From Anthoceros angustus (taxonomy: Eukaryota > Plantae > Anthocerotophyta): a stretch of 64,000 bases of DNA. The DNA lies in NCBI GenBank assembly GCA_010909165.1, contig VJWM01000309.1, positions 1-64,000 on the forward strand. The letters are read 5' to 3'. Below, one piece after another: positions 14,101-53,745 of the stretch. A program made the position numbers and the translations under genes. Every line of letters starts with the position of its first letter. The stretch's first letter is position 1. A model generated the notes under the pieces. It was not told the DNA's origin and did no database searches. It saw nothing but the letters and a program-made list of their open reading frames with translations.

Positions 14101-14398
14101 CAACAATCTGTCAGGACCCATCCCAGGCACACCCAAATTCTCCCGCTTTGAGGAGTGGTCATTTGTGGGCAACCCCAACTTGTGCGGCCTTCCTCTCCAC
14201 TCAGCATGTAAGCTTCCACCAGCAACTCAAGATCCCGTAGGACTACCTTCATCACCACAACCAGCATCCCAGTTCCTGGAAGATTCCATCTCACTGGCAG
14301 GCTTCTGTGGAGGATTTAGCCTGGCCTTCAGCACCACCCTGGGCCTCCTTCTCTTCACCCAGAGGGGATGGTCATACGTCAATATACTTAATACCTAG
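11166..14398 (+). CDS. Leucine-rich-repeat receptor-like protein (RLP, no kinase), two exons
   Basis: Exon 1 (11166-11334) encodes a signal-peptide-like N-terminus. GT..AG intron 11335-11645 joins in frame to LRRNT (HCTWEGIQC), many plant LxxLxLxxNxLxGxIP repeats, an island domain, GNPNLCG, a GxxxG-containing TM helix and a short tail ending YVNILNT. Confidence 0.93.
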
Positions 14399-26017: not shown

Positions 26018-26110
26018 GACTAGAAGAAGAAGAAGAAGAAGAAGAAGAAGAAGAAGAAGAAGAATTTTATTGAAGTCCACTAAGGACGGATTTCCGCCTC
26101 CCGACTAGAA
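26018..26110 (-). mobile_element. Extremely 5'-truncated LINE/SINE insertion with (TTC)14 tail and 8-bp TSD
   Basis: (GAA)14 followed by TTTTATTGAAGTCCACTAAGGACGGATTTCCG, almost identical to the LINE end at 36111-36153. GACTAGAA lies on both sides (26018 and 26103). Confidence 0.8.
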
Positions 26111-30057: not shown

Positions 30058-31195
30058 ATAATAACTTAGCCCTTCAACACATATTGTTTATATAGAAAAC
30101 AGAAGCTTCCTTAAAGAAGATTCGCCTGAAGTTTTATGCAAGAAGATAAAAAAGAACTAGTTTCATATATAATTTATATTATTTTATACGATACTTAAAA
30201 GACATTATGGATATTTATTTTCTTGTTCTCTTTCTTTGTTGTTGTGTGTTTCGTAATTTGCATTGTGCTGTTGGGTTTTGTATTCACATGAACATTGTGT
30301 TTGTATTTTGTTCAAATTTATCCCAAAAAAAGAGGATATGTTAAACTCATGCATTCATTGAGATGAGTGTATTTTAAAAGCTACAACAAAGCTACATACA
30401 CAATGTGAAAGCAAACCAAATATATAAGAAAGTATATAAAAGAACAAGTACACAAATTTCAAGAAAAGATACTGCATAAATATAACCTCTTAAGAATATA
30501 ACAACCTTTCTGAAAGTTAAAAAGTAGAGTGTTCCCATTGTAATATGAGATACAATTTAAAAGAGTGTTCCTACTCTAATATGAACTATAATGTAGATCT
30601 TTGGTTGACGAGACTATTCTCATCTCTAATCGTAATATAGTTTAATCAATAAATTCTAGCACTTTTCTTAAAAATACCTAGGTCTTTTATATGAGGTTCT
30701 CTATAAAGTTATGATGAATTTTAATAAAGAATAATATACTTTGTCCATAAGCAACAAACATGTCCAAACCCTGCTGTGTACTCAGCGATGCAGTCATTTC
30801 ATGTCATCCCACTTAGAGATTTGGAAAGAATGGCGTTCGCTAGGATGACAACAATTTCGTCTTACAAGGGAGGTTTTGGAAAAATTGAAGGCAGCTTTTG
30901 TTATTGCGCCTCTTTTGCGGACCACTTGAAATTGAGTCGTCGCTGCAAGTGGACAACGTTTGAATCACAAGCAAGTGACACTTGCCTCCTTCGGCAGTGC
31001 ACTTAGCTCTCTCAGCAACTCATACAACAATGCTTCTTCTGGATGCTTTTGGTCTCCCACCAGAAACGTGTGCACACTTTGTTCTGTTAAGATAGCATCT
31101 CTAGCCCACTAATGTGTGTCCAAATGGCTTAGGCCAAATGGACACACATTTATAAGAACGTAGTGATTAAGCATCCTCAAAGCATCCTCAGCTTA

Positions 31196-31347
31196 GATCG
31201 GTACTTAGATGGGGTGCCTATAGGGAGTGGATGCCCTTGGTGCAAGTAGCTTAGCTATAGGCACACCATGGTACAAGTTGTTAAGTACTAAGTCCCATGA
31301 TGGAAATTCGTCCTTAGTGGACTTAAATAAAATTCTTCTTCTTCTTC
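31196..31347 (+). mobile_element. Short non-autonomous retroposon (SINE-like) with the LINE-type 3' end and (TTC)5 tail
   Basis: Ends GGAAATTCGTCCTTAGTGGACTTAAATAAAATTCTTCTTC. Its body matches the units at 44983-45252 in reverse complement. Confidence 0.75.
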
Positions 31348-31449
31348 ACTAGCTCACTAGTTTATCTAGAGTCACTTAATAGTATTTAAACACAATTTTG
31401 ATGTATTCATAATTATCATTAATCAAGTATGTAACAAGAGCAGTTTATG

Positions 31450-32345: not shown

Positions 32346-33575
32346 AAACAAGACCCCTTTACTAGGGACCTCCGCATCAGGAACGGTTTTTGTAAGATGG
32401 GCAGACATTGCATACTTCCCTTAAGTGGAACGAGCAATCGCCAAACATGAGCGGGTACCCAGGTACTATTATCACCACTCCTTCTAATAATTATTGATAG
32501 GACAAATAATATGCCGTGGATGACCCCAATAATAGGCTAACCCACTAGGATAGATGATAGACACTTAAAGAAACGCAAGGTTAAATATGTATCATCTACG
32601 TGCATTGGTAACATATGATCACGATGCTGTTAAGAAAGAGAGCAGTGGTCCCGTCTTCTCGGCACAGCTCGACCGCCTGCCTTTGGATGTCGCGGAGTTC
32701 CCAGAAAAGCCACCCAATGATCGCCGGCCAGCGCCGGGTGAAGACCGTGCCAGCCTTCTCTTCCATGAGACGCATTTTAGACGAGGAAAGAGCTCGGCTA
32801 ACTACCGTCTTTCACGTTCGCGTAACTGTCGTCAACCGTCGAGATCCGCACACACGAGGAAAGAGGCCCCTTCTGAACATGTGAAGGGGTCTCATTTCAC
32901 ATTCGGCACGAACTTCTGCAGGGAGCTCGACTGCGCCAGTGCCTGGGTGCCCTGCCATCTTCAACTATATGTGCTATGAGTCAGTGTAAAGTATGGATGA
33001 AACATGCTTCTCCCATAGTTCTCCGAACAGGAAACGACCACCTCCACCTGAACAAAGACATTGTTGGTTACGGAGATGATTACAAACAAGCTTTCATTTA
33101 TAAGAGAACCTTTAAAGAAATTGCAGAGCCCCAGGCCACTTCAAGACGTGCAAGGGAAGAAGAGAGCCCACCAGGAGAGCAGACTGTACAAGCCAGCTTC
33201 ATGGCAGTTCGAAATCATGGACAAACCCATCTGCATATCTGCAAGCTAGACGATAGTGACCCATATTCTGCCAGCGTGATGTTTAGGCCATAATGGACAT
33301 CCCCTCTTGAGCTTGTGCGATCCTGGGAAGATCGTGTCCTCAGCCCGGCCACACACAAACTTCTTGTGACGATTTCCTCATTGCATCCTGGCTCTGGTGG
33401 TTTTCGATCCTTCAGACTCGACTGAAGTTACATGAATTTTAGCAGCCTTTTTTCGTGCTAGCCTTCTGGCCAAGTCAAGAGATCCAAGCTTCAATGAGAA
33501 GAAGGCAGTTGCTCACATGGAGAAGCAGAAAGGATAAGGAGCAAATTGCAGCGGAAAAATGCAGGCCGTGCACGT

Positions 33576-35573
33576 TTAGAGACGGAAGGACTGCAACAAC
33601 ATATTGCACCTTTGTTTCCCCTCATATGAACTGGAGGAATATGAGTTGTCCAAGGGTTTGCAACGCTGATGAGGTTGATTGCTCTGTCGAGCAGGTCCAA
33701 TTTTGGGCCAAGACCTGGGAAAATACGAAATGTTGAAATTTATTGGAAGCATATGTGCATTGACAAAAAATCACTGCGGGCAAGGTTGGGGATGCCATAC
33801 CGGTTTGTCAAGTCAATCCTGTATGGCACACCATTTTGGACGATGGTTGTGGCAAGCCGTGAGTTTCCAGCTAACAGCTCCAATTCCTGGCCAACATACG
33901 GAGTCTTCTGTGCATCGACATCACACACAACTGACCTTATGCGCGGCTTGTGACGATCCAGAATGACCTGTTCAACAAAGAAGTCAGCTGTGAGTGATAG
34001 GAGATTAATGACCTCACATCTCACCTGGTACACAGAACATGATGGACAGACCAGAATCACTATGCTGGAACCGCAGAAATACTAAGTGCTGGTACCTGTG
34101 CAATAACATGGCGGAAGACGTAGTGTTCATCTTGCAAATGCAGGCGGGCTATATGCCCCAACTTGTCATATGTTGTCGGTACAGCCATACCCACAGGGAG
34201 CAGGTCCTGCAAGATCTGCACAGAGTCCACAACACCAAATGGGAAATACACGCTTGGATGCTCCAAAGGGTCCAAGGGAATCTAGATTGTATATCCTTGC
34301 CCAACAATAAACAATCGATTTTCTAGCCAGCCGTGAAGGAAAGAGTCGTCAGACCTCATCCACTGCCCAATAGTCATACGAAAGAACCAATCTTGTCTGG
34401 ATAAGTTGCCGTGTTGTGAGTCCTCTCTTGTTTCCAGCTGCAACAGCCATCTGGCGAGCAGAGCGCACCGAATGCAGAGCTGGAGTTGTCAGATGACCAG
34501 AAAACTTGGAGGCCTACCTGACATGAAAGCACAGCTCATAACCGTCCCCTGGTTCAGACCTGAAGAGCCATGGGAAGTCCGTCCAAGGCTTTCCCTGCAA
34601 GCCCTTCATCCAGTAACAACAGTCTCGTTGATCCTTGAAATCTTCTCAACTGTTTTCCTTGCTCTAACAAACCTAGAAAGTCTCCTATTGCTCCATGATC
34701 CTTCCCAACTCCCCACCCATCCTCCACAACTTCCACAACCACAGCTTTCTCCTCCCACATGCTTCTGCTCTTCCCCCTGGCTTCTACCATGTTAGATTTG
34801 TCGTTCTGCAATTTTTCCGCAGAGTCTTTCTTGCTGTAGATGAGAGACCGTGCTGCACCTCTAGGCCTTGATAGTTCCTCAAGATGTGGAAATCTTTCCT
34901 CCTTCTTCCTCCGCAGCCTGACAACCCCAGTCCTCAGCGCTGCTTCACTGCCAACATCATCATCCTCAAAAACAGCCTTTCTGACGGTCTCAGAAACAGT
35001 TTCCTCTTTCCTCTCGCCATCCCAAAACAGGCCTTCCAAGTCCTCGTCAACTTCATCCCCGGTAACCCTTGCAAGGTTCTTGATACGAGGCCAATTCAAC
35101 AGATGCCCTCGAAGCTGATATGCCAACTTATCACCCTCGTCTGACGGAACTCGCAAGGCAGCAATATCATAAACCCTGGTAAACCCAGCCCTGTCAATGT
35201 CAGCTCCCTTGACGTATCTCGGCTTCGTCAGGAGATGGTTGTAGCTGCTAATGTCGTACACGCTGGTTTCCTCCTCCCCGTCTCGTTGGATTCTCTGCCA
35301 CCTTTCCTTTTTGGTATCTGAAGCACATCCTCTGCGGCCCCGGCTCAGAGACGGACCCAGATGGAGACCAGAGAACGCACAGACTATGTTGGCATGGTGC
35401 CGCCGAGTTCGTCTGCGTGAAGAGAAGAGTCCTGTTTTTGGAGGAATTCCTCGACCCAAGCGCAGCCCTGATTGTTCCCAAATCTGTATACCAAACTTTT
35501 GGAAGGAAGACAGAGCCTTTGATTCGGGTGTTGGGTTCCAGAATGCAGCTCTGCAGTGGCCTCCTAACATCAT
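33576..35573 (-). CDS. TRM5: TRM5 (tRNA m1G37 methyltransferase, organellar-type) paralog lacking the SAM-binding C-terminal domain
   Basis: Five exons spliced in frame: FTRVYDIAALRVP..LRGHLLNWPRIKNLARVTGDE..RLLLLDE; LVLSYDYW; ILQDLLP..GHIARLHL; VILDRHKPRI..LELLAGN; then RSWPKIGPARQ and a stop. No FAGVGP motif follows. Confidence 0.8.
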
Positions 35574-35655
35574 GCCCAGCAGATTTCTACGAGAGACGGA
35601 TCTTGCAAGCCTCGAATTTGAGATTCTAAGCCCTATTTTCGTCAGGGGTCGACCA

Positions 35656-36000
35656 ATGTGAAGTTCGGGCGAAGTTGAGGACTGGACATGCAAAGGGAAT
35701 GTGATCCATGTGAAAGAGACCTTGGCTGCAAAAGGGACCTTGGTCTTGCACCATCGTGCACAATTGTGCACTACAACAAAGTGCCAGAAAGGCGGGAAAT
35801 GGTATGACAACTTTGAGGATTGTCTCATCTCCGTGTCACCCAAGTGCAATGTGGGATGCCCCTGTTTCGCTATCTTGTTCATGTGGTACAGTAGTGATGT
35901 AGAATCGTTCTAAGTTGTCCAGTTTAGAACCAGTGAAGCTCGTGCTTTCCTGCATTTCCCCCGACAAGTTGGTTGTGAGTGTGAACAAGCAAAGCACGGT
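35656..36000 (+). pseudogene. ELP6: Decayed 5' copy of ELP6
   Basis: Colinear with 50276-50693. Codon 2 is TGG->TGA, exon 1 has a deletion, and the copy stops shortly before the LINE tail at 36111. Confidence 0.85.
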
Positions 36001-36110
36001 GCAACATGATCCCGTGTTACAGTGGATGTCAACATTCTTTCCGGTGGGAACAGGGTAAAGTCACCGGTGAAATCCAGAAAGAATATGACAATTAAATAAT
36101 TAATTAGTAC

Positions 36111-37683
36111 GAAGAAGAAGAATTTTATTCAAGTCCACTAAGGACGGATTTCCGTCATGGGACTGATATGACAGATATACAAAGAGACTATAATGAAATT
36201 TAACTACTATTCTGAGTCTGGCGTAGAGAATAGTGCTGTGAGGCATAATCAAATATCCGGCAAGTTGAGAAGTTGAAGTTGGTTGGTCCTCATTTCCCAC
36301 ATTTGTTTCAAGCAAACTCCTGCAATAATAGGGTCAGGAAAATTGAAAAAACCCCTGAGTGAAGATCGAGCTGTTGTAAATAGATTGATAAATGTATGCC
36401 TGATATCTTCATATATGGGACAGAGGAAAACAAAGTGTTCCTCATTCTCAACATCCCTGTTGCATAACCTGCATATTCGGGTCTCCTTAGGTGGCTTTGG
36501 ACGTAGCCATCTATCAGTCTCAACCCTGAGATGGTGGGACCCCACCCGAAGATGACCCATAATCATCCTAAGCTTGAAGGACACATGGGTGCGAGATAGA
36601 GAGGAAGCATTGGTTTCCCAGAGTTGGAGAGGATACGAAAAAGTTGTTTGTAAGTTTCTAGCTTAGTGGGTAAGGGAGAGATAGGAGACCGTATAAGACA
36701 AATAGGTAGTTTGCAAATCAAGGCGGATGGACTTATTCGGAGGAGGGGAAGGAATTGAAGAGGGGTGGGCGGAAGACTCTCGGGGGAATCCAAACTTCTC
36801 GGCCGGAAGAAGGCGAGCATACCAGGTCTTGTTTCGAGGAGGCTAACTTCCGGGATGATTGGAATGCAAGAAGGAGGTATGAGGGAGTGGAGGTGGGGTG
36901 GTTAGAATGGGCTTCTTCTAAAGAGTAAAGGCGGTATAGGAAGTTGGTTAGGCGAAATAGACCCTCAAGTTCAAGCGGGAAAGTGGCAAACTCTGCAAGA
37001 AAGATGGCAAGGGGGACAGACTTCTTACATGCAATGTGGGGCCGAAGAAAGGATGTCTGAACCTCCTCCACCCTGCACCAGTCGTCGAGTGAGAGGTAGG
37101 GTCCCCAAAACTCGGCCACATACATAGCCGAAGGAATCACAACTGTGTTGAAGAGCCATTACTGAGTGGGGATGTCCTTGATGTGCATCCTAGAGCACTG
37201 TCTCCGAACCCCACATGCAGATGCCACACCTTTGACAATGCGAGCAGAGGTAGAGAGCTTCCATTGGAGTGTCGGGCCATAGAGAGTGCCACCTAGGTAG
37301 ACATAAGATCGAACAACCTCCACATGCTCACCATAGTAGAAGAACTTCAAATTGTCTTTGAGCGTCGGTTGAAAAACATGACCTTGGTCTTCTTCAAGTT
37401 GACCTCCAAATCTCTTGCCGCGCAGAAGCGGGACAATGTGTCTAGTTGCTGTTGGAGGCCCTCAGGAGAGTGGGACAAAAGGGCAATGTCATCTGCATAC
37501 AAGAGAATAGCTATATACCAAGGAGAGGAGGCAACCAGGATCCCCAGACTCCGCAATCCAAGATTCCAGCTCATCAATGTACAGGTCAAATAGGTTAGGA
37601 GAAGATGCATCTCCCAGCCGCACCCCCATATTGCAAAGCAAATCCAGAAGGTCAAAAGCAGCATAGGGTGTGCGGATCCTAGC
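36111..37683 (-). mobile_element. 5'-truncated LINE (RTE-X/L2-like) with RT, C-terminal Cys/His motif and (TTC)n tail
   Basis: GVRLGDASSPNLFDLYIDEL; ILLYADDIALLS..LQQQLD..LEVNLKKTKVM; VVRSYVYLG; LRVGSHHLRVET..RICRLC..ENEEHFVFLCPIY. Contains frameshifts. Confidence 0.9.
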
Positions 37684-40600
37684 CTTCACCAGCGTTCAGA
37701 CAACGGCGGTGAATTCACATTAAACGAATTTCAGGCCTATTGCAAGGACGCAGGCATTGGGAGACAACTTACTGTTGTTTATACACCGCAGCAAAATGGT
37801 GTTGTTGAGCGCTTGAACCTGACTTTGCAGGAGATGGTTTCATCTCTGCTTCATCAAGCTTCTCTTCCTCTCTCTTATTGGGCAGAAGCCCTAATGACAG
37901 CTGTGTATCTCCGCAACAGATTGCCTACAACTGCTGTGCCTGGAGAGACCCCTTATGAAGCCTTCTATGGCCGGAAGCCAGCTCTCCTACATCTTCGGAC
38001 TTTCGGATGTGTTGCATACGCTTTCATCCCTAAGACCCAGAGACCCAAGTTAGTTGCTAAAGCCAAGAAATACCTTATGATAGGCTATACTGAAGGTATC
38101 AAGGCTTATAAACTTTATGACCTACCTCAGAACAAGGTGGTCTATGCACGCAGCGTGACTTTTGATGAAGGTCGCACTTGGCAGCTAGTGGGAGCTGTTC
38201 CCAACGAGGAGGCCCTTGACATTTCTGCCCTGCCTGATGTCACTGTTTTTCCTGACACTGCCCTTGAGGAGGTTGCTCCTGCAGGGGGGAAAGAATAGCA
38301 AACTGATGAGCAGGAGCAGGAGGTTGCACATGATGCAGAAAACTTTGCTCACTTGCAGCCGCAACCTCCTCCAGCTGATGCAGAACCTGACCTTTTACCT
38401 GATTCCATTCCCGATTCTGACGAGGATGCAGCTGCTGACGATGCGATCCTTTCGACATCGATGCAGAAGGTGAACCCGTGCTTTAGCCTTTGCCACCTGA
38501 ACCTGGACAGCCTCCACCACCTGAGCGCGTTATCCTGCAAGAGAAAGACAGGCACCAGACTATTACCAGTCACAGGACTTCAGAAAACCAACAGCTAATG
38601 CAGCTACTTCTCTGGATCTAATTGAACCTCAATCCTATGAAGAAGCTCCTGAACCTCAATCCTATGAAGAACCTCAATCCTATGAAGAAGCTCTTAGCCG
38701 TCCTGATGCTGCTGAGTGGAAAAAGGCTATACAATCAGAATATGATTCATTAATCAAAAATGGGACATGGGAACTTGCTAAGTTACCTCCTGGACCAAAG
38801 GTGGTATCATGCAAGTGGGTATTTAAATTAAAGGTGAAGGCAGATGGAACATTTGACAGGTACAAAGCACGACTCGTAGCTCGTGGTTTTTCACAAGTGC
38901 CTGGTCTTGATTACTTTGAGACATATGCTCATGTTATGAAGCTGGCCACTTTCTGCACAATTTGTGCTCTGGCAGCATATCAGGATTACGAGTTAGACAT
39001 GTTCGATGTAAAGACAGCGTTTTTGCATGGCAAACTCGACACGGAAATCTATATGCAGCAACCACCAGGATACGAAGTTAAGGGCAAAGAGGATTACGTC
39101 TTACGCCTGATAAAGACCCTGTATGGGCTGAAGCAGTCAGCTCTCGAGTGGAATGCTGTCATGGATGAAGAGTTGCGAGCATTAGGTTTTTTGAAGTGTG
39201 TCTCAGATAGCAGCTTGTATGTTTACAGATCCGATGATGTGGTATGCTATCTGGCAGTATACGTGGATGATTTGATCTTATCCTACAATAGCCCCACGTT
39301 CATCACCAAAATTAACAAGCTGTTAGCTACCAAGTTTGAAATGACGAACCTTGGAGCTTTACAAAGCTGGCTGGGCGTTCTTATTCAAAGGGATAGGACA
39401 AATTGATCTATATCCCTTACCCAGCCTCGCTACCTGTTAGAATGTGCTAAACAGCTTGGCTTGAAGGATGCAAAACCAGCAGCTACCCCACTGCCTTGTG
39501 GACTGAAGTTTAGCAAGTCCATGGGTCCTGAAATACAAAGCGAGAAAGACGAGATGAGGTCATCTTCTGTGAAGGGCGTTGGCAACTTATCTATCACCAA
39601 CACAACACGACCTGATGTTACCTACACCACAAGCGTACTCTCCCAGTATCTTGAAAACCCTGGACAAACACATTGGACAAGTGTTAAGAGAGTCATCATG
39701 TATTTAAAAGGAACATCAACTATTGGGGTCAAGTTCAAACACATTCCGGGTGTGCCACTGGAGCTGGATGTGTACACTGATTCTGATTATGCAGGAGATG
39801 TTGATACACGAAGATCAGTTTCAGGATATGTTGTCATGGTAGCAGGTGGACCTATCTGTTGGTCCAGTAAAAGCAACTGCCACATCAAGCAGAAATTTGA
39901 GTATCGTGTTCTCACGGCGTGACCAAGGAGATTGCTTGGTGTAAATTGATGTTCAAGGAACTCGGGCTGCCACTCCCAACCTGCACCACAATAAAGACTG
40001 ACAACCAGGGGTCAATGAACTTGGCACAAAATCCCGTTTTTCACTCTCGCACGAAGCACGTTGAGGTGGAATATCACTTCATCAGGGACCTCATCAAGTC
40101 TGGGCAGATCATGCTGGAATATATACCAAACGCAGAGAATCCAGCAGATGTGTTCACTAAATCCCTCAGCAGGGATGTACACACAGACACATGAAAAGTC
40201 TGGGCATGGGCAGCCATGCAGGCTATCCAGAGGCCCCACCTACCAAGACCTAGCCTAGCAGCTAGGTGCAGCCCCAGTCATTGTTGTCATCGTCTGAGTC
40301 ATGGTTGTCATAGTCTGTGGGAGACCTAAATGATCCCCTGCTCACCGAGGAAGTAGACTCAGAAATCTTTTCCCATGAGGCAGGGCTATCAGACTTGGAG
40401 TTGAATGTTTCCGAACCAGAACGAGGGGAGTTTTTTGCTTTCCTCTCCTGGTAGGAGACTCTCTCCTTCGTCTCCTGGCTAGCTTCCTCTTCTAGACGGT
40501 CCTCAGGTCCTATTAGAACGAGTGGGAGGACATCAGGGAGTTAGGATGGCAACAGACATTGACAGGTTATCAGGGGGGTTGAAAATATGTTGCTTAAAGC

Positions 40601-41643
40601 ATAAACGGCAACAGGGAAGATTGCCAAAAACAGGTTAGGCAACTTACTATAATAGTTGATGACATGATCTTCAAAACCTGGACAATTCTGGATGCGAACT
40701 CGGACCATCTTCAGCCCTGAAGCAACACACCTATACCAAACAGGGCTTCCAGGCCATCTAGCTGTTCCAAGGGTAACAATCCTTGTTTCAGACAGTACTC
40801 CTCTTGGCTCAGGAAACTTGGGTGGCGCTGGAGGATGTGGCTCGAGGGAGGCGTACTCGAACTCTCCCCGCTCACACCTGCGGGCATCGAAAGAAGCCCT
40901 TGAGAAGGTCTGCCTCACAGGTCCTGGCGGTGAAGAACGGGGAGATGGTGCTCCCATGTTAGGCTGGCCGTCAGCACTTGGTGTGACTTGGCCAAGGCAC
41001 TGGCGCCGTTGCTCAAGCACCACTCTGGTTGTTCCTCTTGGTCTGCCTCTAGGGCGACCAGTTCCTCTTGATGTCCCAGCACCGACAGTCCCCTTCGCAG
41101 CAACACTCTGAGTCATGGCTGAAGGGCAGGCAGTCGTTCTAGCTGAGGCAACGAACCTCCCCAGAGCATCTCTCTGGAAGATCCAACGCTTGGGACTTGA
41201 GGAGAGTTCTTCAGACTCCGAAGAAGACATACCGCCCAGTGCTGTGAGTTTACGCCCCAGAATCCAAGAGAGAATGAAAGCCAAAACGTAAAAACAAGCT
41301 AACGTGCACGCAGCGGACCTGAACGGGGCAGTCTTCATGTTGTGCGGTTCCATTGCTATCCAGCGAGGTCCAGCTGCCACATCCGGTACACACTGTGTAG
41401 AGTAAGCTGGCTGGTTGCGAACTCTTGGTCTAGCTGCCTACCCAAGACCCTCGTGGAGCTGGAGACAGTCCTTTGCGTAATGATCAACAAGTGGGAGTAA
41501 AGGAAGATAGTGTGTCGATTCCTTGCTTAGGGTTTCGTTATATCCACATATATAGCTGGCGTGTACGCGTATATAGTTTAATGTTTAGCCACTTACCTCT
41601 TCCTAGGGTTACGTCTCTAGCCCAAAGGTCATGTCCTTTCACA
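37684..41643 (+). mobile_element. Ty1/copia retrotransposon, 5'-truncated: integrase, RT, RNase H, long 3' region, PPT and probable short 3' LTR
   Basis: DNGGEF..YTPQQNGVVERLN; CKWVFKLK..RYKARLVARGFSQVPGLDY; DVKTAFLHG; YVDD; YTDSDYAGD; HSRTKHVEVEYHFIRD; ADVFTKSL. AAGTGGGAG PPT at about 41489 and an LTR-like segment at 41498-41643 ending CA. Several stops and frameshifts. Confidence 0.92.
40262..41230 (-). CDS. Antisense two-exon gene inside the copia 3' region, encoding an AT-hook protein (about 276 aa)
   Basis: Exon 1 is 41230-40648. Intron 40647-40510 has a GTAAGT donor, CTAAC branch site and TAG acceptor. Exon 2 (40509-40262) is open in frame to TAG. Motifs RDALGRF and GRPRGRPRG. Confidence 0.6.
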
Positions 41644-42429
41644 ATTAGATTAAGTCTAGTTGCTACTCTGATTTACTTACTTCATATTCTTATGAGCATA
41701 TGATAATGTAATTACTAAATACGTAATTGATCTGTACCATTCTCATAATTCGTTAAGAGGCACAATGTCATGACTCAAGAGGTCATTGATTTGCCATGTT
41801 AGATTAATTAATGCAAGTCTATGAGGCCTGCTCCAGAGAGGCCTATTAGATAATAATTCAAGCATTTTAAGTAATAATTTGCAGAGTGAGTTACAAAACT
41901 GAAAGAAACCAATGCAAAGAGAGCTGAATGGAACAAGTTAATTATAATTGATTGGAATGTGAAGCATTCAAAGAAAATTGTAATTAACTGGAAAGCGGTT
42001 ACTGATGACCATAACCCTAGTGGTTTCATATGGAGCTTTGACTGTTGGCTTAAGAAATAGTTAATAGAATACTATATAAATAGTTTTTCACTAGAAAATA
42101 GGCATTCTTTTGAAAGTTTCTCACGTGATTATTATATTCACAGCCATTTCACATGCACAATTTTCATGATTTGTAATTCATAATACAAAATCTTAAGCTT
42201 TGACTTATCAATAGAATCATGTATTCTTTGTTGTGATCATGTGTGATTATTTATTTAGTTGATTAGATAGAATCCATTAGAAAATAACTCAGAACTTTAG
42301 AGTTTCTTGTTTTACTTGGATTAGTTTAGAATTTCTTACTCTAGCTTGATCAGCTTGAGACCTTCTTACTTTCAAAAGAATACTTGTTTTGTTTTACTGA
42401 ACATAATCCCATAAGTGACGATAATAAAA

Positions 42430-42768
42430 ATGGAGAAAATTTTCATTATTGTGGGACCTATGTTTAGTGGCAAGTCAAGTTACTTTTTAAGAAGCATATA
42501 ATTAGAACGAGAAGCAGGTAGATTAACAATCTTAGTTAAGTCTGACAAAGACAATAGATATGCAATCAATGCAGTTGTAACACGTATAGGAGAATAATTA
42601 AATTGTCTAACTATAACCGAGTTGAAGAGCTTAAAGTCAATAATTAGTGAAGATCAATTTGATAGGTTAGACACCATTGGTATAGACGAAACGCAATTCT
42701 TTTCTGATTTGATAGAATTCTGTGAAGAGTCAGCCAAGAAAGAAAAGAAAATTATAGTGGCGGGATAG
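42430..42768 (+). pseudogene. AT-rich intronless thymidine kinase (TK1-type) fragment
   Basis: Translates as MEKIFIIVGPMFSGKSSYFLRSI*...LVKSDKDNRY...IGIDETQFFSDLIEFCEESAKKEKKIIVAG*. Two internal TAA stops; truncated just before the expected LDG motif. Confidence 0.88.
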
Positions 42769-42930
42769 TGTGCAAGCTTGTTTGTGCAAAATGAGATGAG
42801 TGCGCAAATAAGCTTGCATACTATCCCTCCATGATAACGAGATGAGTGATAGTGTGCAAACTTGTTGCGCAAAATGAACGAAAAAATCTAGGTGCGCAAA
42901 TATGTTTGCACATTTGGGGGTTAGAAGATC

Positions 42931-43122
42931 CAGGTGTGCGCACCTGGGGGCAAGGGGGTCCAGGTGGACGAACAAGTGCACACACCATGGGACAAGGGCG
43001 CCCAGGTGGGCGAACAAGTGCGCACACTAGGGGACAAGGGCGCCCAGGTGGACGAACAAGTGCGTGCACCATGGGGCAAGGGGGCTCAGGTGCGCGCACT
43101 GGTGTCTGCATCAAGGGGCAAG
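42931..43122 (+). repeat. 42-bp tandem repeat, about 4 copies
   Basis: CAGGTGGACGAACAAGTGCGCACACCATGGGACAAGGGCGCC-like unit at 42961, 43003 and 43045, with partial flanking copies. Confidence 0.85.
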
Positions 43123-43172
43123 GGGGAATTCCATAATTCATATATAATTCCACATTCAATGTGGAATTATGT

Positions 43173-44423
43173 ATGAGCACAACTTACCATCTAGATACTG
43201 ATGGCTCAAATGAGCAAGTCAACCGAATCCAAGAAGAATACTTAACACATTATGTGCAGATTGATCAGAGGGATTGGGCTAATCATCTAGACGATGCAAA
43301 ATTTCATTATAACAACATTGCACATAGCTCTCTGAGATGTAGTCCTCTTGAGATGGGAAAAAATTCAGCACTCGACGTGGTATCCATGCTAAATGCTAAA
43401 GTTTTCGACACTACCACTAGAGATCCACGCCAATTCATTGAGCAGTTGAAGGCTAGACATGAGATTGCCAAAGGAATTTTAGCCAAGGCTCAAGCACGTT
43501 AGAAGAAATATGCTGATAGGCATAGGAGAGAAACTGTCTTCAACATTGAGGATAAAGTATGGATCATTTCCCAATACCTAAAGGATTAATTCTTAAGTTA
43601 AGGCCAAGATATGGTGGTCCATTTGTTATCTTGAAGCGCATTGGAGAAGTGCCTCACAAGTTACAAGCGCCTGAATGGATTTTTGCACACAATGTGTTCC
43701 ATGTATCACTATTGAAACCATTTGTGCTAGGCAAAAGAGAAAGAGGACATGGATAAGAAGAAGTACAGTATTCTTGTGCAGCATAATCAAGGACTGTGGG
43801 AAATTGAGGAATTCCTTGCAGGGAGTAGCGTGCCTACGAAACATGGAATCATACCACAGTATATGGTAAAGTTGCGTGGGATCCAGTTTGGGTAATGTTA
43901 GAGAATATTCGGAAAGGATCCTGGATCATCACTCGATACATTGGCTATCACTGAGGACAGTGATTCTTTTCCCAGAAGAGAAGAAAGTAAGAAGCTTTGC
44001 ATGAAAGGAATGCAGCCCTGGATCTAGTCTAGTAAGTTGTATGTAGTGGTGGTAAGGCTTAGGTTAAGGGGTAAGGAATATAGTCTGCTTTAGGTAGTTA
44101 CTTTAGGAATGAATTAAGCCTCCCTATAAAATGAGATGAGGCTAACCCTAAAGGGTATGATCCTAGGATCCTAGCATTTAGAGCCATACTTGTGAGGATT
44201 GGACTAGGGTGCCTACAGGCTTGGGGAGCCTAGGGTGTGAGCATGTTTAGGAGGATCCTAACACTTAGGGCTACACTCTTGTGAGGACAGAACTGAGGTG
44301 CCTACAGGCTTTGGGAGCCTAGAGTGTGAGCGTGCTAGAGGAGAGCTGTTGAGGAGGAGATCGAGGGGAGAGAGCTAAGCTCCTAGCTTAGGCAAAGAGG
44401 GGAGCTCTCTCTGATCTCTCACA
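43173..44423 (+). mobile_element. Ty3/gypsy chromovirus-type 3' fragment: integrase, decayed chromodomain, PPT and LTR
   Basis: STTYHLDTDGSNEQVNR..DWANHL..YNN..HSS; KLRPRYGGPF..HNVFHVSLLKPF; YMVKLRG..WVMLENI. TGAGGAC plus a purine tract at about 43952-43986, then an LTR-like segment with a TATA motif (44124) and an internal duplication, ending CTCACA. Confidence 0.85.
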
Positions 44424-44931
44424 TATTCTTGTTGACTCTTGTTGGAATAAAGAGTAGCGGCAAAGGTGCTGATTGCGAGTAGTCGCGTGGAAGGACGGCG
44501 GGCTACTTGGAAGCCTAGTGCTGGTGTCTGGTGATGTTATTGCCACTAACTGCGTGACTGCCCCACCTCGCTGGAAAGGGGGTGTTACTTATTAATACTT
44601 TTCCCTTGTTGTTGAGAGAGTAGTGTACAGAACGATAGCGAGCGCGGGAGATGCAGCTGCTTCGACACCGGTGGCAAGTAGTCCTTTTCACATCCCCGAC
44701 CACGAAGTTCTTCGCGTGGTTGGTAGTTTTGAAATGCATGATCGTGGGGGCTACTCCCCCTGACATGGTGCCTTTCGTTGGGTTTTTGTCCCTTTGTTTT
44801 AGGGGTGGATGGGTTTTTCCCATTTCTTTTTAAAATAAAGTCTCCTTTTTCTCGTTGAGAGAGTAATAAATATTGATAAAATAAGATGATAAAAAGTGGA
44901 AATAAAAATAAATGGATAAAATTAATCACTC

Positions 44932-45252
44932 GAAGAAGAAGAAGAAGTTTATTATAATCCATTTGGATGGAATTTTCCTATCATGGGACTTAACAACTTG
45001 TACCGTGGTGTACTTAAGCTTCCAGCACCGATGGTATCCAATCCCTCTAGGCACTCCATTTATATGGGACTTGGTACTTGATAACTTGTACCACGGTGTG
45101 CCTAAGCTACCAGCAAACACTGATGGCACCCACTCCCTCTAGGCACCCCATTTATATGGAACTTGGTACTTGACAACTTGTACCATGGTGTGCCTAAGCT
45201 ACTAGCACCAATGGCATCCACTCTCTCTAGGCACCCCATCTAAGTACCAATC
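44932..45252 (-). mobile_element. SINE-like element with three tandem ~85-90-bp hairpin units and (TTC)n tail
   Basis: (GAA)5 tail, then three copies of ATGGGACTTGGTACTTGACAACTTGTACCATGGTGTGCCTAAGCT...TCTAGGCACCCCAT. Same family as 31196-31347. Confidence 0.75.
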
Positions 45253-45265
45253 TATCGATGTCGAT

Positions 45266-45629
45266 GCTTCTTCAGCAAATGGTTGTAGCTGCTAATTAAT
45301 GTTGTATACGTTGGTATCCTCCTCCCCATCTCGTTTGATTTTTTGCCACTTTTCCTTTTTATGATTTTAAGTACATCCTCTGTAGCCTCGGCTCAGAGAC
45401 GAACTCAAATAGAGATTAGAGAACACAAACTATGCTGGCATGGTGACATCAAGTTTGTCTACATGAAGAGAAGGGTTGTTTTGTTTTGGAAGGAAATCCT
45501 CGACCCAAGCGCAGCCCTGATTGTTCCCAAATCTATGTACCAAATGTTTGGAGGGAAGACAAAACTGTTGATTCACGTGTTCGATTCCAAAATGAAGCTC
45601 TGCAGTGGCTTCCCAACATCATGCCTAGC
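45266..45629 (-). pseudogene. Third, decayed partial copy of TRM5-like exon 1
   Basis: Colinear with 35222-35580, for example CCTCGACCCAAGCGCAGCCCTGATTGTTCCCAAATCT; AT-shifted with indels. Confidence 0.85.
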
Positions 45630-46205
45630 AAAAGAAGAAGAAAAATTCATTGCAGTCTATTGAGAAAGGATTTCTGTTATGAGATTATCTGATCTTAGTA
45701 AGAAAAGACTAAGATCAAGGTCATAATCCAGAACTCTTCGGCTTGGCTCACAGGACCAAGAGTATGCAACCTACACAATATTCTGTTCTAAGATTTCCTT
45801 CAACCGTGAGAAATCCGTTGCAAGCCTCCGTAAAAAGATATTTTTGAAGAAAAAATGCTTTTATTGTTCAATAAACTAAAGATGAGCTCGGCGTACATTA
45901 AGCAAGAGAAGTAGACTTATCATACATCTAGTAAGAGAAGTGCAATATCAAAACTCATGTATAAAATTGGCATTAAGAGTCGGTTGAAACATATGTAATA
46001 ACCTTAAATTATATTTATTATTGAATAGTTTAGAATTATAAGATAATAATAATTAAAAATAACATTATTTTTCTCAGAAACAGTTACAAATACAATACTC
46101 ACCTCTAGATCGAGTATATGATAATTTGAAATCGATACATCAGACTTGTGAGTTCTATATATGTGAGCATAGTAAGAGGAAACATTCAATTATTTTTAAG
46201 TTTTC

Positions 46206-48281
46206 ATGATGTTTACCATGCATTTTGCTAGGTTGTTGGTGATTTTGGTATGCTCAATTATGGGCTATGCATACGAATCACCATTCAAAATAGAGAGATA
46301 TGAGAATGTCGTCCTACCATTTGTTATATCCCATAATGTACGCAGGTCCATGTTTAACTTTCAGAGCTTCTTAAAAATATTGTTGATTGCTTTTATGACT
46401 AATAATGCCTCTTTCATGGTTATGAAGTAACATGTTATGAGGATTTATTTCATCAAGGTTGTAGACCATGTATTTATTATCTTTTGGTGTATGGATTTCA
46501 GCTTTCGGATGGCTCGATAGTTGATTGTGTGAAAATTGAACACCAACAAACAATGCAGCATCCACTCTTCAAAGACCATGTTATTCAAGTATGTGTTTTT
46601 TATTTACTTTAAAATGTATGTAGTCAATAACAACATCAATTTCTAGTGTCCTCTCCCGATTTTGTTCATAGATCATATGTGACATGTATTATGCAGACTT
46701 CACCAACAGCACCCCCAAAACCTATGAAAATAGGAAACAACACAAATCGACCGGTTCAACTTTTTGAACACGAAGTGGGTTCTTGTCCAAGGAGAACTAT
46801 TCCTATTCTACGTTCTTCAAGGGGAGATATTCAAAGTCAAAGAAAGTTGCAGAGGTTACCTACAAGAAAGACCATAGACTCAATAAGTGATGATCCCTAT
46901 GCAGGAGGCCACCATGTAAGTTATAACTTTATCTCTGAACCATTGTATATCATGACATAAAATGTGATAAAATATATATTTTGTATACATGTTTAATGAA
47001 GTAAAACCTAGATTTGTAAGAATATTTTGATGATGTTGACTTATGGTACTAACATTTTATCTCTTAAGTATGCACTTTATGCACAACGTGAATGGGGAGC
47101 GGAAGAGTACGGAGTCAATGGAGGTGGAGCACGGATAAGTTTTTGGAATCCTCAAGTGGGTGATGATGACATGTCTAGTGCGCGTCTAAGAGTTTCTAGG
47201 CCGACTGAAGCCGACTTTCACGAACCGGGTCTTGCATATGGTTCAAACAGTGCTGAAGTGGGGTGGCATGTAAGTCTCTTTCATATATGAATCTTTTTCC
47301 AAATTAAAATGGATGGCTAATCATTTTTTGCGGTGAAATATGGATGGCTAATCATTTTTTGTGGTGAGACACGGATGGCTAATCAAAATTGAAATGCCTT
47401 GAGCTTATATACATGTTTATCCTCAAACAGGTACTACCGTCCCTCTATGGAGACAGAAACCCTCATCTATATATATTTTGGACGGTATGTACTAGTCAGA
47501 ATAGGCCAAACATTTATTTGCTAAGTTTTTACATTTTTTGTTACTCACTTACATCAGATTTGTGCTTGTACAGGCAGATAATTATCAATTTACAGGATGC
47601 TTCAATGCCAAATGTTCAGGATTTATTCAAACATCGGAGGCTTACCTCTTGGGTGGTGGGTTTCATGGCGACTACGTGGGTACCAGCATGATGTTCTCCA
47701 TTCATAAAGTATGATATCTTATAATTTGATTGAATTTCTCTCTCTCTCTTGCTTATGAAGCATGTTTTAATTACCGTGAGTTGTTGTTGATAAGCATGCA
47801 TATGATAATTAACTGTTTGTGTCTTCATTGCTTCTTTGTGATGCAGCCAGGTTCTCCTCAAGATGATTTATGGTTGTACATTGAGGACCAACCAGTGGGT
47901 TATTGGCCAGCAAGTATATTTAGTCCATATGTTCTTCAAAATAACTACCCTCGTGATGTAGAATGGGGAGGCAATGTCTTCATTTCAAACAACGCATTAC
48001 ATGTAGAAATGGGGAATGGAAGGTTAGGTGATACCGGTGTTTCATCGGTACCATGTGGAGACAATGACGTACCAGCCCATTTTGCTGTTTTGCATTTATT
48101 AAAATTGGATTCGCGAGAGACTGGGTGGCGACTGACTTTCCATGATGACAATTTTCACATTATCGACCACGTGTTTGAATCGTATCCTTACGAGTTCACT
48201 GCAAAGATCCTCCTATCCCAACCAAGTGGTCCTTGTCTAGCTGGAGGTCATTGGATGTATTATGGTGGCATTTCCATGTAA
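46206..48281 (+). CDS. Neprosin-family (glutamic peptidase, DUF239) secreted protein, seven exons
   Basis: Signal peptide; activation peptide DGSIVDCVKIEHQ..HPLFKDHVIQ; SCPRRTIPILR; FWNPQV; SAEVGWH-VLPSLYGD..LYIFWT-ADNY..GCFN..CSGFIQ; VGYWPASIF; VEWGGNV; EMGNG; YYGG. Confidence 0.92.
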
Positions 48282-48510
48282 GATGATTAATTTTTACTTT
48301 GGAATATCAAACTTGAAATTCAAGTTTTGAGTGGATTCTATCATTTTTGATCCTATAAGTATGCTCTGTAAAATTTCAACGACTAAGAAAACATTGAGAG
48401 TCAGGCTATATTACCATGATTGAAAGTAGAAGACCGCCATAGATCTTCCTTGTCTATTTATGTTCATTCATGTTCAATCAAGCTTGATGATCGCACCAGG
48501 TTCCTCCAGT

Positions 48511-48703
48511 CAAAACTTGGGATAACCTCAACCGTTGTAAGCTTATGATCCCACCAAGTCCTCCTGTCAAAAACTTAGATAACCTCAACTTTCGAAGGCC
48601 TGATAGAAGGCAAAATATCTACTCAAAACTTAGGATAATCTCAACTCTTCTAAACTTGATGAACCCACCAACAAAAACTTAGGATAACCTCAACTGTTGA
48701 AGG
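48511..48703 (+). repeat. Diverged ~55-bp tandem repeat x4
   Basis: AAAACTTAGGATAACCTCAAC core at about 48512, 48570, 48625 and 48674. Confidence 0.75.
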
Positions 48704-48987
48704 ACGAGAACAGAGATAAACACTAAGCCCATTGAAGAACTAGAAAGGTAACTGTGCACCCTCATGTTTCCTGCAACCGAAGCAAAGCAGCATGCCTAGG
48801 TGATTAGGAAGCGAAGACTCAGAGATACTATCTTCAGATGGAGCAAAGTCTGCATGGAAAACAGCAACGTTTGCACGGGTTGATTGTGCTGAGCTGTAGC
48901 CTGTAAGTGTCCCAATTCTCAAATTCAAGCCCTACAACTCCAACTGCCAGATAAACACTTCCAGAGACAGTACATCGGTCCCTCCTA

Positions 48988-50200
48988 TATGCTTCTGCTT
49001 TCCCCCTGGCTTCTACTATGCTAGATTTGCCCTTCTGCAACTTTCTCCTCACTGTCTTCCTTGCGTAGATGAAAGCCCGTGCTGCACCTCTAGGCCTTGA
49101 TAGTTTCTCAAGATGTGGAAAACTATCGTCCTTCTTTCTTAGCAGCTGCTTTTGTGCGCCCCTTGGAGTAGATACACTTGTGCTGGTGAAATCCACACTC
49201 CCCCCGAATAAAATTTCAAGACACTAGTGGCCTCTGCCTGGCATTTGCTCTCTCATGCGCAGGGTACAGTACTATGAAGGAGGGAAGCCAAAACCTGCTT
49301 CTTTAGGTCTGCAACCAGCAACGTGCAGCACCTTCCTAACTTGGGCAAAGAACGAGATTACAGGCGATCATTATCTGGAGTGACAGCCAAGTCTAGCTAG
49401 CCAGTGTATAAGAGGGGATGCCCTCATTTGCTGATCAAGCGGGAAGCAACATTTCAGTCTCCACTTTTTTCTCTGAGTGCTGCCAGTCTTTCGTTGAGGA
49501 TTGCCGTGCAAGGGCCACCCTCCACATTGCTGTTGCAGTCCAGCAGAGTCACGCCTGTCTCGATATCTGTATGTATGTGTAGTCCATGATGTGCTTTGTC
49601 CACTGAAGTTGTTGTTGCAGTCCAGCAGAGTCACGCCTGTCTCGATATCTGTATGTGCGTGTAGTCCATGATGTGCTTTGTCCAATGAAGTTCCTGTTGC
49701 AGTCCAGCAGCGTCACGCCTGTCTCAATATCTGTATGTATGTGTAGTCCATGATTTCCGTTGTCCACTGAAGTTGCTGTTGCAGTCCAGCAGAGTAACGC
49801 CTGTCTCCATATCTGTATGTACTCGTAGTCTATGATTTGCTATGTCCACTGTCTGCCTCAATACATGTATGAGTAGGGATCTTCGAAATTGGTAGAGGAT
49901 GTATGGGATACACGAGACCATGCCAGAAATCCATCCTTTGGGTAATATCACAAAGAAGAGCATGGGTTGCTGTGTCCGTACACAAGGCCAATTCAGCAGA
50001 TGCCCTCGACGCTGATGTGCCAACTTTTCACTCTCCTCTGGCGGAACTCGCAATGCAGCCATGTCGTAAACCCTGGTAACCCCAACAAATACCTGGGGAG
50101 GAAGACGGGACCCAAATACCTGGGTAGGAAGACAAGACCTTTGATTTTGGTGTTGGGTTCCAGGACGGAGCCCTGCAGTGGCCTCCTGACATATGCTCAG
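48988..50200 (-). pseudogene. Fragmented TRM5-like copy head-to-head with intact ELP6
   Basis: 48988-49144 matches 34758-34914 (FPHLEKLSRPRGAAR). 49985-50080 matches 35087-35183 (ALRVP..RGHLLNWP). 50125-50200 matches the start-codon region. The pieces are separated by deletions and an 82-bp repeat array. Confidence 0.85.
49531..49850 (+). repeat. 82-bp tandem repeat x4
   Basis: TGTTGCAGTCCAGCAGAGTCACGCCTGTCTCGATATCTGTATGT... at 49531, 49613, 49695 and 49777. Confidence 0.92.
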
Positions 50201-50275
50201 CAGATGTCTAGGACGAGAGACCGATCCCGCCTTTAATTTCAGATCCTAAGCCCTATTTTCGGCAGGGGTCCAACG

Positions 50276-51463
50276 ATGTGGAGTTTGGACGAAGCTGTGG
50301 ACTGGACAAGCAAAGGGAGTCTGATCCTTGTGAAAGATACGTTGGCTGCCAAAGGGACCTTCGTCTTGCACCATCTGCTTAAGAGGCTCCTGAGAAATCC
50401 AGCAAATCCACAGGACCGGCGTGGAAGCGTGAAGGTTGTGTTTGTGGGGCTTGCCGATACTTTTGGGCACTACAACAGAGTTGCCAAAAAGCAGGTAAGG
50501 ATCAGTGCGACAACTTTGAGCTTTGCTTATCTCCATGTCTCCTAAGTCCAATGTTGGAAGAACAAACCTGTGTCTCTGTCTTGTTCATGTGGCAGGGGTG
50601 TAACTTGTCCAACTCTAGAGACAGTGGAGCTGTTGCTTTCCTGGAATTTTCCCCAGACAAGTTCCTGGAGAGTGCGAAGAAGGAAAGCACGGTGACACGT
50701 TCCTTGCAGTAAGTGGCATGCATCCTGATCTCGCCCCGATGTTTCTAATGATGCCATCGCCTCAGACCAGACCCGTGCTGCATAAACGTGCAGGAACCCT
50801 CTCTTCAACCTGTATAGCAGAATAAGACAGGCAGTAGGAAGGCTCCTTGTAGGCCACACCGAACACATATGTGTAGTGATTGATGATGCCTGCTTGCTGG
50901 AGGTAGCGGCTGCCGGCTCGCTGCACCATGTGCTAGACTTCTTACACTACTGTCGAGCACTATCCTGTCAGCAGGAGCAAGTAAGTAAATCCCATGTCCA
51001 GACTCCAGTTCAGAGTGGATTTTATAACCCTGACTGCAAAGTAGTATAACTGGTACACCTGGCTGATGGATGTTGGAACCTGTGTTTGCAGGGTTGCTCG
51101 CTGGTGGTGCTTGTTCACAATGACATTTATGACGAATCAGACCCCTTCTCCTTAGTTCATGCGTTGGAGTCTGTCTCTGATGTTGTGCTGAACGTGGAGC
51201 CTTGCAGCAAAAATATATCAACTGATATGCGAGGCGTGGTAGGGTATCTTTGCCATGGCCCTTCATTTTATCTTGATGCTGGAGTGGGGAAAGGAGAAGA
51301 TGTCTGAACCCTGTGTTGTGTGCAGCTAACTGTTATTCATCGTGCCATCCCAGCTGGTGCAGACGATGTTGAGGAGAAAACTGGTTGTACCCAGGAGGTG
51401 AGGAGAGTCCAAACAGTTCGGTTTGAATTGTTGGAAACTGGTGTGTCCTACACTGAAGTCTGA
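50276..51463 (+). CDS. ELP6: Elongator complex protein 6, five exons
   Basis: LILVKDTLAAKGTFVLHHLLKR..FGHYNRVAKKQ-GCNL; VVIDDACLLEVAA..VLDFLHYC; CSLVVLVHNDIY..SDVVLNVEP; LTVIHR..VRFELLETGVSY*. Confidence 0.88.
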
Positions 51464-52707: not shown

Positions 52708-53745
52708 ATGAAGACAATCGCAGTTATGGCTCTTTTGTTCATTGCAGCAATATATGCAGAGGCGAATGCAGGGACCAAACCTATTCAAAACAACCCTCCA
52801 ACTTCCGGGCATAGTTCTCCACCCACTCGTAGACCTCCTACCCCTCCTAAGAGTAAGTTCTCTCCACTTCTTTCACCAGGTTTCCTATTTTGGAGTTGTA
52901 TAGCATGAGTTATCATGGGCTTCCCTTGGCTTGGCAATCCTGACCATCCGCACGTCCACGCAGACCACTGCCCTCCAGGCTCCGTGTGCAAGGACCCGGT
53001 GATGAAGACCCAGAGCGGGCAGCAATTCTACTTCCACGGGACCAAGAACGCCGACTTCTGCCTGGTCTCCGACAGGGAGCTGCACATCAACGCGCACTTC
53101 ATCGGGCTGAGCGGCTCCAACTCCAACGTGAAGCACGATTTCACATGGGTCCAGTCCCTCGGAGTGCTCTTCGCCGGGAACCAGCTGTACATCGGGGCAA
53201 GGAAGGTGGCGGCCTGGGATCCCGCCCAGGACCAGCTGGTGATGGTGCTCAACTCCGAGCCCCTGGTCCTCCCCGCCGGAGCTGGCGCAGTCTGGCAGTC
53301 CCCCGACCTCGGCGTCTCGGTCACCCGGACCGAGTCCGCCAACGCCGTCGCCGTCGACGTCGCCGGGTACGTGAAGCTCACGGTTTTCGTGACCCCGGTT
53401 AGCGCCCAGGACGACGCGGCGCACGGATACGGCGTGCCCTTCGGCGCCGACTGCATGGCGCATCTGGATGTTGGGTTCCAGTTCGCGAGCTTGTCGGAGC
53501 AGGTGAGCGGCGTGCTCGGCCAGACCTACTCCCCGAGCTTCCAGATGCCCGCGGGATCTGGAGCCGGATCCATCCCCAGCATGGGGGAGAAGGAGAAGTA
53601 CGTCACTTCTGGCGTCATGGCGCCTGACTGCGCCGTCTCCCGCTTCAACACGGCTGCTGCGTCCAGCCTGCTAGTCGGCGAGGCGCAGTCCATCACATGC
53701 GGCTCTGCCGACGCCACGGGGCTCGGCATGGTCTGCCGCCGTTAG
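52708..53745 (+). CDS. Root-cap-domain / LEA-related secreted protein, two exons
   Basis: Signal peptide and Pro-rich exon 1, GTAAGT intron, then VCKDP..FYFHG..DFCLVSD..HINAHFIG..DFTWVQSLG..DCMAHLD..GVLGQTY..DCAVSRF..GMVCRR. Confidence 0.92.

Follow-up and report, generated by a model that had tools for sequence, protein, structure and literature searches.

Organization of the locus

The window is a 64,000-nt stretch of the hornwort Anthoceros angustus (contig VJWM01000309.1 of GenBank assembly GCA_010909165.1, positions 1 to 64,000 of the forward strand), to which all positions below refer. It carries two copies, A and B, of a divergent arrangement formed by a TRM5-like gene on the minus strand and ELP6 on the plus strand. 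In copy A, the TRM5-like gene (32559..35573) is intact and expressed and faces a relic of ELP6; in copy B, an intact ELP6 gene (50276..51463) faces pieces of TRM5. The spacer between the two starts is present in both copies, as are 5′ exons of either gene, and opposite each complete gene lies a truncated version of its partner. The layout probably arose when the middle of an old head-to-head TRM5-like/ELP6 pair was copied by a small duplication, by which the pair was split.

Copy A (~34729-36030) and copy B (~48957-50720) were aligned by a repeat search and by gapped self-BLAST, resulting in collinear blocks of 72-87% identity. The blocks pair A 34729/34751-34917 with B 48957/48981-49146 (83-86%), A 35085-35187 with B 49982-50084 (87%), A 35501-35755 with B 50123-50375 (83%) and A 35764-36001 with B 50463-50694 (72%). 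Fragment C (45266-45630), a third piece, aligns with A 35222-35581 at 81% identity. Block offsets amount to 14.2-14.9 kb from A to B and 10.05 kb from A to C, and E-values of 1e-28 to 1e-96 exclude chance by far. A first-pass annotation, made from the letters of the window, had described two copies of a divergent pair about 14.6 kb apart and a third TRM5 fragment at 45266-45629; both descriptions were confirmed, the fragment with the limits measured here. The start-to-start spacer, which is assigned to no strand, measures 83 nt in both copies (A 35574-35656; B 50193-50275).

Structure and expression of the TRM5-like gene

Public RNA-type contigs (X1, X2, X16 and X21) were aligned to window positions 32000-36100. 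X1 stems from the same organism and is 100% identical to the window; X16 and X21 stem from relatives, at 90-95% likeness. The contigs delimit seven exons of the TRM5-like gene of copy A on the minus strand: 35573-34560, 34450-34355, 34215-34096, 33967-33801, 33714-33610, 33465-33172 and 33047 to at least 32559. All six introns are GT-AG in X1, with no intron coverage, and X16 and X21 have the same splice joints. The gene is expressed in at least three organisms. Its coding sequence runs from 35573 to 33378 (529 codons), with the TGA stop at 33380-33378 inside exon 6. A spliceable minus-strand gene starting at ATG 35573 had been read correctly from the sequence; its end had been set at 33576, which is the stop reached by unspliced read-through, and the RNA contigs splice exon 5 to exons 6 and 7 instead.

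X1 is also collinear with 35470-35817, running unbroken from TRM5-like exon 1 over the copy A spacer into the ELP6 relic. As the contig extends to 35817, the 5′ untranslated region (UTR) of the TRM5-like gene is at least ~244 nt long. Upstream of the ATG, the minus-strand frame stays open for 103 further codons (35574-35882); this stretch runs antisense to the ELP6 relic and contains another ATG, at 35882. A 22-nt stretch at window positions 35561-35582 is tandemly repeated in X16 and X21. X2, X16 and X21 depart from the window just upstream of 35582, and the similarity of fragment C stops at the same point (35581).

X1 further contains a second version of exon 1 over 34869-35105, 8% diverged and at about 2x depth, several variants of which are common with the relatives' contigs. 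This version is neither copy B nor C and must therefore represent a further copy elsewhere in the genome.

Absence of the methyltransferase domain

For both the TRM5-like gene and ELP6, searches were carried out with each window exon singly; the reading frames across exon joints of the window were computed. Whole-protein tests were made on P0106, an uninterrupted natural open reading frame (ORF) from an RNA contig of a relative. Two contigs of this relative, the closest one found, were used: L001, a genomic contig, and L007, a spliced RNA contig. Its proteins are ~60% identical to those of the window. Loci examined for comparison were the moss TRM5 loci L002 (Ceratodon) and L003, and three other plant contigs, L004-L006.

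Exon 1 of the TRM5-like gene matches plant TRM5 with phmmer E-values down to 1e-25. A profile constructed from 44 full-length proteins of plant TRM5 matched copy A at positions 41-401 of 591. There was no other match to this profile in the 64 kb, and positions 402-591, which hold the D3 domain, were unmatched throughout. The missing half was also sought in the window by relaxed tblastn, and neither this search nor the profile hidden Markov model gave more than noise. As predicted from its exons, the protein consists of the TRM5 domains D1-D2 followed by a new basic tail, with no methyltransferase domain.

The break coincides with a gene-structural landmark. Canonical TRM5 genes have an exon boundary at profile position ~398-401, and exon ends at profile positions ~270, ~303, ~344 and ~398-401 are alike in the window, L001, the mosses and the other plants. 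Past this last boundary, canonical loci carry methyltransferase exons, to ~588 in L002, L003, L005 and L006, and to 545 at the contig end in L004. The canonical motif exon, VYWNSRL..E..R, is replaced by 'RSWPKIGPARQ..' in the window and by 'GCWPKVS..' in the relative.

The mRNA of the relative (L007) tells the same. It encodes P0106, a 463-residue ORF that covers TRM5 profile positions 36-406 and ends in '...KIDLAQ GCWPKVSATGQYSKVM*', 16 residues past D2. In P0106, Pfam detected TYW2_N_2 alone (41.5 bits against a cut-off of 27.7) and no match to PF02475 (D3); on single window exons of the TRM5-like gene, TYW2_N_2 remained below cut-off. For a structure model of P0106, the 11 best matches were all Trm5 or TYW2, aligned to residues 1-~140 (D1-D2) with Z-scores of 4.7-5.7, the next unrelated match scoring 3.8. 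These matches came from the second aligner only, Foldseek giving no significant match with the P0106 model, and the modelled fold thus lends modest, family-specific support to a Trm5/TYW2 D1-D2 assignment. Sequence searches of a structure database with TRM5-like exons 1 and 4 returned nothing useful.

In Trm5, the D3/methyltransferase domain is the site of the residues that bind S-adenosylmethionine and recognize G37 (PMC6344853). Since D3 is absent, the TRM5-like protein is not expected to be a methyltransferase, nor, judged from its sequence, to have m1G37 methyltransferase activity. The proposal of the first-pass annotation that the pair unites two co-regulated enzymes of anticodon-loop modification consequently fails, the methyltransferase domain being absent from the TRM5-like gene here and in the relative.

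ELP6 and the relics

ELP6 of copy B (plus strand, 267 codons) comprises the exons 50276-50494, 50596-50708, 50794-50980, 51092-51238 and 51326-51463, with GT-AG at four out of four introns, the stop at 51461-51463 and an intron 2 donor TTGCA|GTAAGT at 50708/50709. The exon structure equals that of the relative's spliced mRNA, and the protein is 59% identical to the relative's expressed ELP6. When exons were scored singly, Pfam PF09807 matched exon 1 with 32.4 bits (cut-off 31.6) and exon 3 with 26.7 bits at profile positions 116-176. Judged by its complete ORF and apparently usable splice sites, the gene is intact, as had been proposed for ATG 50276 to 51463. In relatives' contigs, the B-type upstream region continues into B-type sequence past the start codon.

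The facing relic of copy B corresponds to TRM5 exon 1 only and lies in pieces on the minus strand (48957..50192): 48957-49146 (codons ~220-289), 49973-50086 (codons ~129-166) and 50123-50192 (codons 1-~23). A 313-nt stretch has been replaced by 38 nt, and an 835-nt insert is present, in which a tandem repeat (4 x 82 nt) occupies 49527-49851. The shredded TRM5 with a relic ATG near 50192 was thereby verified, the ATG occupying 50192-50190. The B-type deletion form of this relic was also found in the relatives X2 and X16.

In copy A, ELP6 is reduced to exons 1-2 (35657..36030, plus strand). Its start codon is directly followed by a stop (ATG-TGA, 35657-35662), and exon 1 has lost 80 bp after 35755 (A 35756-35763 versus B 50376-50462). 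That this copy is dead had been recognized; the ATG-TGA had been placed incorrectly, at 35656.

Linkage in relatives

In L001, the five ELP6 exons are divergent from the TRM5-like start at a distance of 95-98 bp. L007 is 100% identical to the L001 exons, and this single RNA contig is collinear with L001 1767-3047, which contains the spacer together with the first exons of ELP6 and the TRM5-like gene. Genomic and RNA sequences of the closest relative thus bear out the ancestral head-to-head pair that had been postulated. A Root_cap family gene (52915..53745, plus strand) is a conserved neighbour of ELP6, 1.5 kb beyond ELP6-B in the window and at 14-619 in L001, inverted relative to L001.

ELP6 was not found beside TRM5 at the two moss loci (L002, L003) or on the three other plant contigs (L004-L006). 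The pairing therefore appears specific to the lineage of the hornwort window and L001. A scan of metagenome contigs with TRM5-like exon 1 yielded no relatives, and the literature that names TRM5 and ELP6 together does so only as tRNA modification enzymes. Truncation and ELP6 linkage are both common to two species whose synonymous sites are saturated.

The collinear contigs of both species suggest that the transcript of each gene starts within the first exon of the other. If so, only a duplication that included both first exons could part the genes, and the stubs may persist because they serve as promoter or 5′ UTR sequence.

Selection and dating

Between the window and L001, the TRM5-like exons show a non-synonymous divergence (pN) of 0.227 and a synonymous divergence (pS) of 0.747. 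For ELP6-B, the values are 0.252 and 0.723; the TRM5-like gene is thus equally constrained, and purifying selection acts on the part that it has retained. The divergence of X16 from the window amounts to 3.3-4.3% for exons 2-4, 7.8% for exon 5 and 12.7-14.4% for exons 6-7, which are mostly untranslated. We consider it probable that the TRM5-like gene of copy A is functional, in a non-catalytic and probably tRNA-binding role.

For the relics, pN/pS was 0.67 (A versus the B relic), 0.68 (A versus C) and 1.42 (ELP6-B versus the A relic; 33 codons, one stop), as expected if they had drifted neutrally from the start. X2 and X16 carry the B-type deletion form, and the synonymous divergence of 0.17 between A and B is close to the 3′ UTR divergence of X16. 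The duplication is therefore older than the separation of those species.

Proposed origin of the split pair

We propose the following course of events. In the shared ancestor of the window organism and the L001/L007 organism, ELP6 and a TRM5b-type gene would have stood head to head, with their starts less than 100 nt apart and their 5′ transcript ends overlapping or abutting. The TRM5-type gene would already have been without D3, and its D1-D2 protein would have been kept under purifying selection. In the window lineage, one tandem duplication of ~1.3 kb, reaching from codon ~282 in TRM5-like exon 1 to ELP6 intron 2, would then have left a whole TRM5-like gene facing ELP6 exons 1-2 in the left copy and a piece of TRM5-like exon 1 facing a whole ELP6 in the right copy. 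The facing fragments would never have been complete genes and would have drifted neutrally since. Later, ~12.9 kb would have been inserted between the copies, consisting of a long interspersed nuclear element (LINE), Copia and short interspersed nuclear element (SINE)-like elements and other pieces. Fragment C would be a small relic in its own right, connected with the LINE/SINE family.

The first-pass annotation had invoked duplication followed by complementary pseudogenisation of two complete copies. The duplication that separated the pair and gave each gene its own copy of the shared upstream region stands; the pseudogenisation of complete copies left no trace and is not needed. Such a history, in which the complete pair was tandemly duplicated and the inner ELP6 and inner TRM5-like gene subsequently died, is conceivable, and we rate it as unlikely. 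It leads to the same final layout, it equally predicts the conserved outer flank on the ELP6 side, stops and indels in the relics agree with it, and one deletion over the inner junction could have taken out both 3′ parts together. However, sensitive searches of the sequence between A and B recovered neither ELP6 exons 3-5 nor TRM5-like exons 2-7 in relic form, though the 5′ relics are still 72-87% identical; the relic pN/pS values of 0.67-1.42 give no sign of past constraint; and at least one event more than in a partial duplication is called for. There is rather little probability, too, that the TRM5-like gene of copy A is an expressed pseudogene, a TRM5 decaying after the loss of its catalytic half, so that only ELP6 would matter and there would be no complementary retention. 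The absence of D3, the 3′ UTR intron, the mild constraint on exon 1 and the poorly conserved C-terminal tail (see below) would fit this, but the 529-codon ORF is open over five coding introns that are all spliced correctly, and the same truncation occurs in a relative with saturated synonymous sites, yet with a pN of only 0.23. Moreover, exons 2-4 diverge 3-4x slower than the 3′ UTR exons between close relatives, and the gene is expressed in several organisms.

The similarity between the copies might also stem from moved gene fragments, by Pack-type capture or retro-copying, rather than from local duplication. A 54-nt inverted repeat around copy A (31291-31344, 36111-36164) and the position of fragment C, exactly between two retroelement tails and ending 9 nt before the ATG, would speak for this. 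The inverted repeat, however, is the 3′ tail common to oppositely oriented LINE and SINE-like insertions and not a pair of transposon termini, and in A as well as in B a complete gene, spliced or conserved, stands in the ancestral arrangement. The A and B relics keep introns and intergenic DNA and are therefore not retro-copies. As an explanation of the locus, transposon capture is very improbable; for fragment C only, it is possible. The first-pass annotation had itself named two outcomes that would overturn its reading. One was that relatives show the two genes unlinked, with the similarity tracing back to fragments captured by transposable elements, and in one relative (L001/L007) the genes are linked. 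The other was that long reads collapse the copies. As an artefact of assembly, A and B would be uncollapsed haplotypes or the product of a mis-join, and nothing in the sequences examined speaks for this. A and B are 13-28% diverged, with large unlike indels, and the A form and the B-type deletion form are both carried by contigs of relatives. The duplication is therefore real and old, and the chance of an assembly artefact is negligible.

Several observations weigh against the small duplication and against a functional TRM5-like gene, both of which we nevertheless prefer. The original A/B junction is interrupted by the 12.9 kb of insertions, so that the one-step model rests on the absent 3′ relics, and these could also have been removed by one later deletion. 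The neprosin-like gene in the spacer, described below, is not obviously a transposon. The RNA contigs are unstranded, and overlap of the 5′ ends is therefore not proven. The further exon-1 copy in X1 leaves the orthology of the relatives' transcripts to the window copy uncertain. Exon 1 looks only mildly constrained among close relatives (13 synonymous versus 22 non-synonymous changed codons among the 40 differences shown), and little of the tail past D2 is conserved between the window species and the L001 species. Finally, intron 6 (33171-33048) is spliced within the 3′ UTR, ~205 nt after the stop. A spliced intron downstream of the stop is a frequent mark of transcripts destined for decay, and given this intron the TRM5-like transcript may be a target of nonsense-mediated decay.

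Spacer and surrounding sequence

The spacer between the copies (~12.9 kb) consists largely of retroelements. It starts with a LINE fragment on the minus strand (36111..37664), in which a zf-RVT ORF (36249-36584) and RVT_1 (37347-37664) were recognized. At its 3′ end the fragment has a (TTC)n tail, which appears on the plus strand as (GAA)n at 36111. A fragment of a Copia-type retrotransposon follows on the plus strand (37813..40194; integrase SH3-like domain, RVT_2), and a tandem repeat of ~5 x 42 nt lies at 42931-43140. A SINE-like element on the minus strand (44932..45269), with a LINE-type 3′ tail and internal tandem repeats of ~90 nt, abuts fragment C. An element of the same family lies left of copy A in the opposite orientation (31180..31360, plus strand).

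Fragment C itself (45266..45630, minus strand) is a TRM5-like relic from -9 to ~+350 (codons 1-~117) with two stops. A retroelement tail adjoins it on either side, the second one beginning at 45632, and no continuation past the flanking elements was found. It may be what is left of a third copy, or else a retro-element-mediated chimera.

Members of the LINE/SINE family have in common a 3′ end of ~54 nt followed by (TTC)n ((GAA)n on the plus strand). They were located at 26030-26096, 31180-31360, 36111-36164, 44932-45269 and 45632-~45690, and their opposite ends are cut short to unlike lengths, in line with what retro-elements usually show. That the inverted repeat flanking copy A marks a gene-carrying transposon was considered and rejected, as the repeat is the LINE/SINE 3′ tail present in two independent insertions.

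Pieces of a neprosin-like gene (46646..48281, plus strand), with activation-peptide and Neprosin domain pieces in unlike frames, lie in an AT-rich stretch (GC 0.35); the gene may either contain introns or be decayed. Ordinary plant nuclear genes occur elsewhere in the window, at 3210-6017, 8672-9916, 11603-14398, 19134-20090, 20686-24509 and 59869-61641. They include a pentatricopeptide repeat (PPR) protein with E/E+ motifs, an F-box/kelch protein, leucine-rich repeat (LRR) proteins, ATP synthase delta (OSCP) and several RING-finger genes.

Implications

A small duplication of the kind proposed here is an ordinary event; more novelty lies in a TRM5 paralogue that is conserved although it has no catalytic domain. 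If the small duplication is correct, a tight, overlapping bidirectional pair can be dismantled by copying its shared middle, which gives each gene a private promoter and a dead stub of its partner without a phase of reciprocal loss. This calls for caution in interpreting comparable split-pair layouts in other genomes. Should the TRM5-derived gene be functional, it would be a pseudo-enzyme descended from a tRNA modification enzyme and fixed beside an Elongator subunit, and the question is raised which gene provides TRM5b-type activity in the window lineage. More speculatively, and in a form that we consider improbable as a whole, the ELP6-linked gene might be a conserved non-catalytic descendant of TRM5 that acts as a tRNA-binding D1-D2 adaptor, chaperone or regulator, possibly together with Elp456. 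Its transcription would have overlapped that of ELP6 since before a deep species split, and the duplication would have uncoupled units that were otherwise inseparable.

Comparison with known systems

Exons 1 and 2-4 of the window gene are homologous to the plant Trm5 enzymes, AtTrm5a (At3g56120) and AtTrm5b (At4g27340), which are tRNA m1G37 methyltransferases, and intron positions are common to both. In its long N-terminal exon the gene is similar to the long form of AtTrm5b type, and one match, from Camelina, is named methyltransferase 2. Unlike these enzymes, the window gene has no D3/methyltransferase domain and cannot be classed as a methyltransferase. Compared with known ELP6 (Elongator subunit 6, PF09807), the ELP6 protein of the window showed no peculiarity; what sets the gene apart is solely that it is paired in the genome with a TRM5-derived gene.

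The retention of a different pair member by each copy recalls duplication-degeneration-complementation and reciprocal gene loss. Both of these models, however, begin with complete duplicates that then degenerate, whereas the evidence in the window favours fragments that were incomplete from the start.

The closest parallel known is the human BRCA1/NBR1 region, where a partial copy of the partner lies opposite each complete gene. That region holds a duplicated BRCA1 promoter region with PsiBRCA1 and NBR2 (PMC8268747, PMC3207938). There, as in the window, the shared promoter and the first exons of both divergent genes were copied, and a truncated pseudogene lies tens of kb from its parent. The window differs in that its unit measures only ~1.3 kb, lies in a plant genome and has starts 83 nt apart. 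Its spacer is a later insertion outside the duplicated unit, and both of its fragments look dead, whereas NBR2 is a transcribed long non-coding RNA gene.

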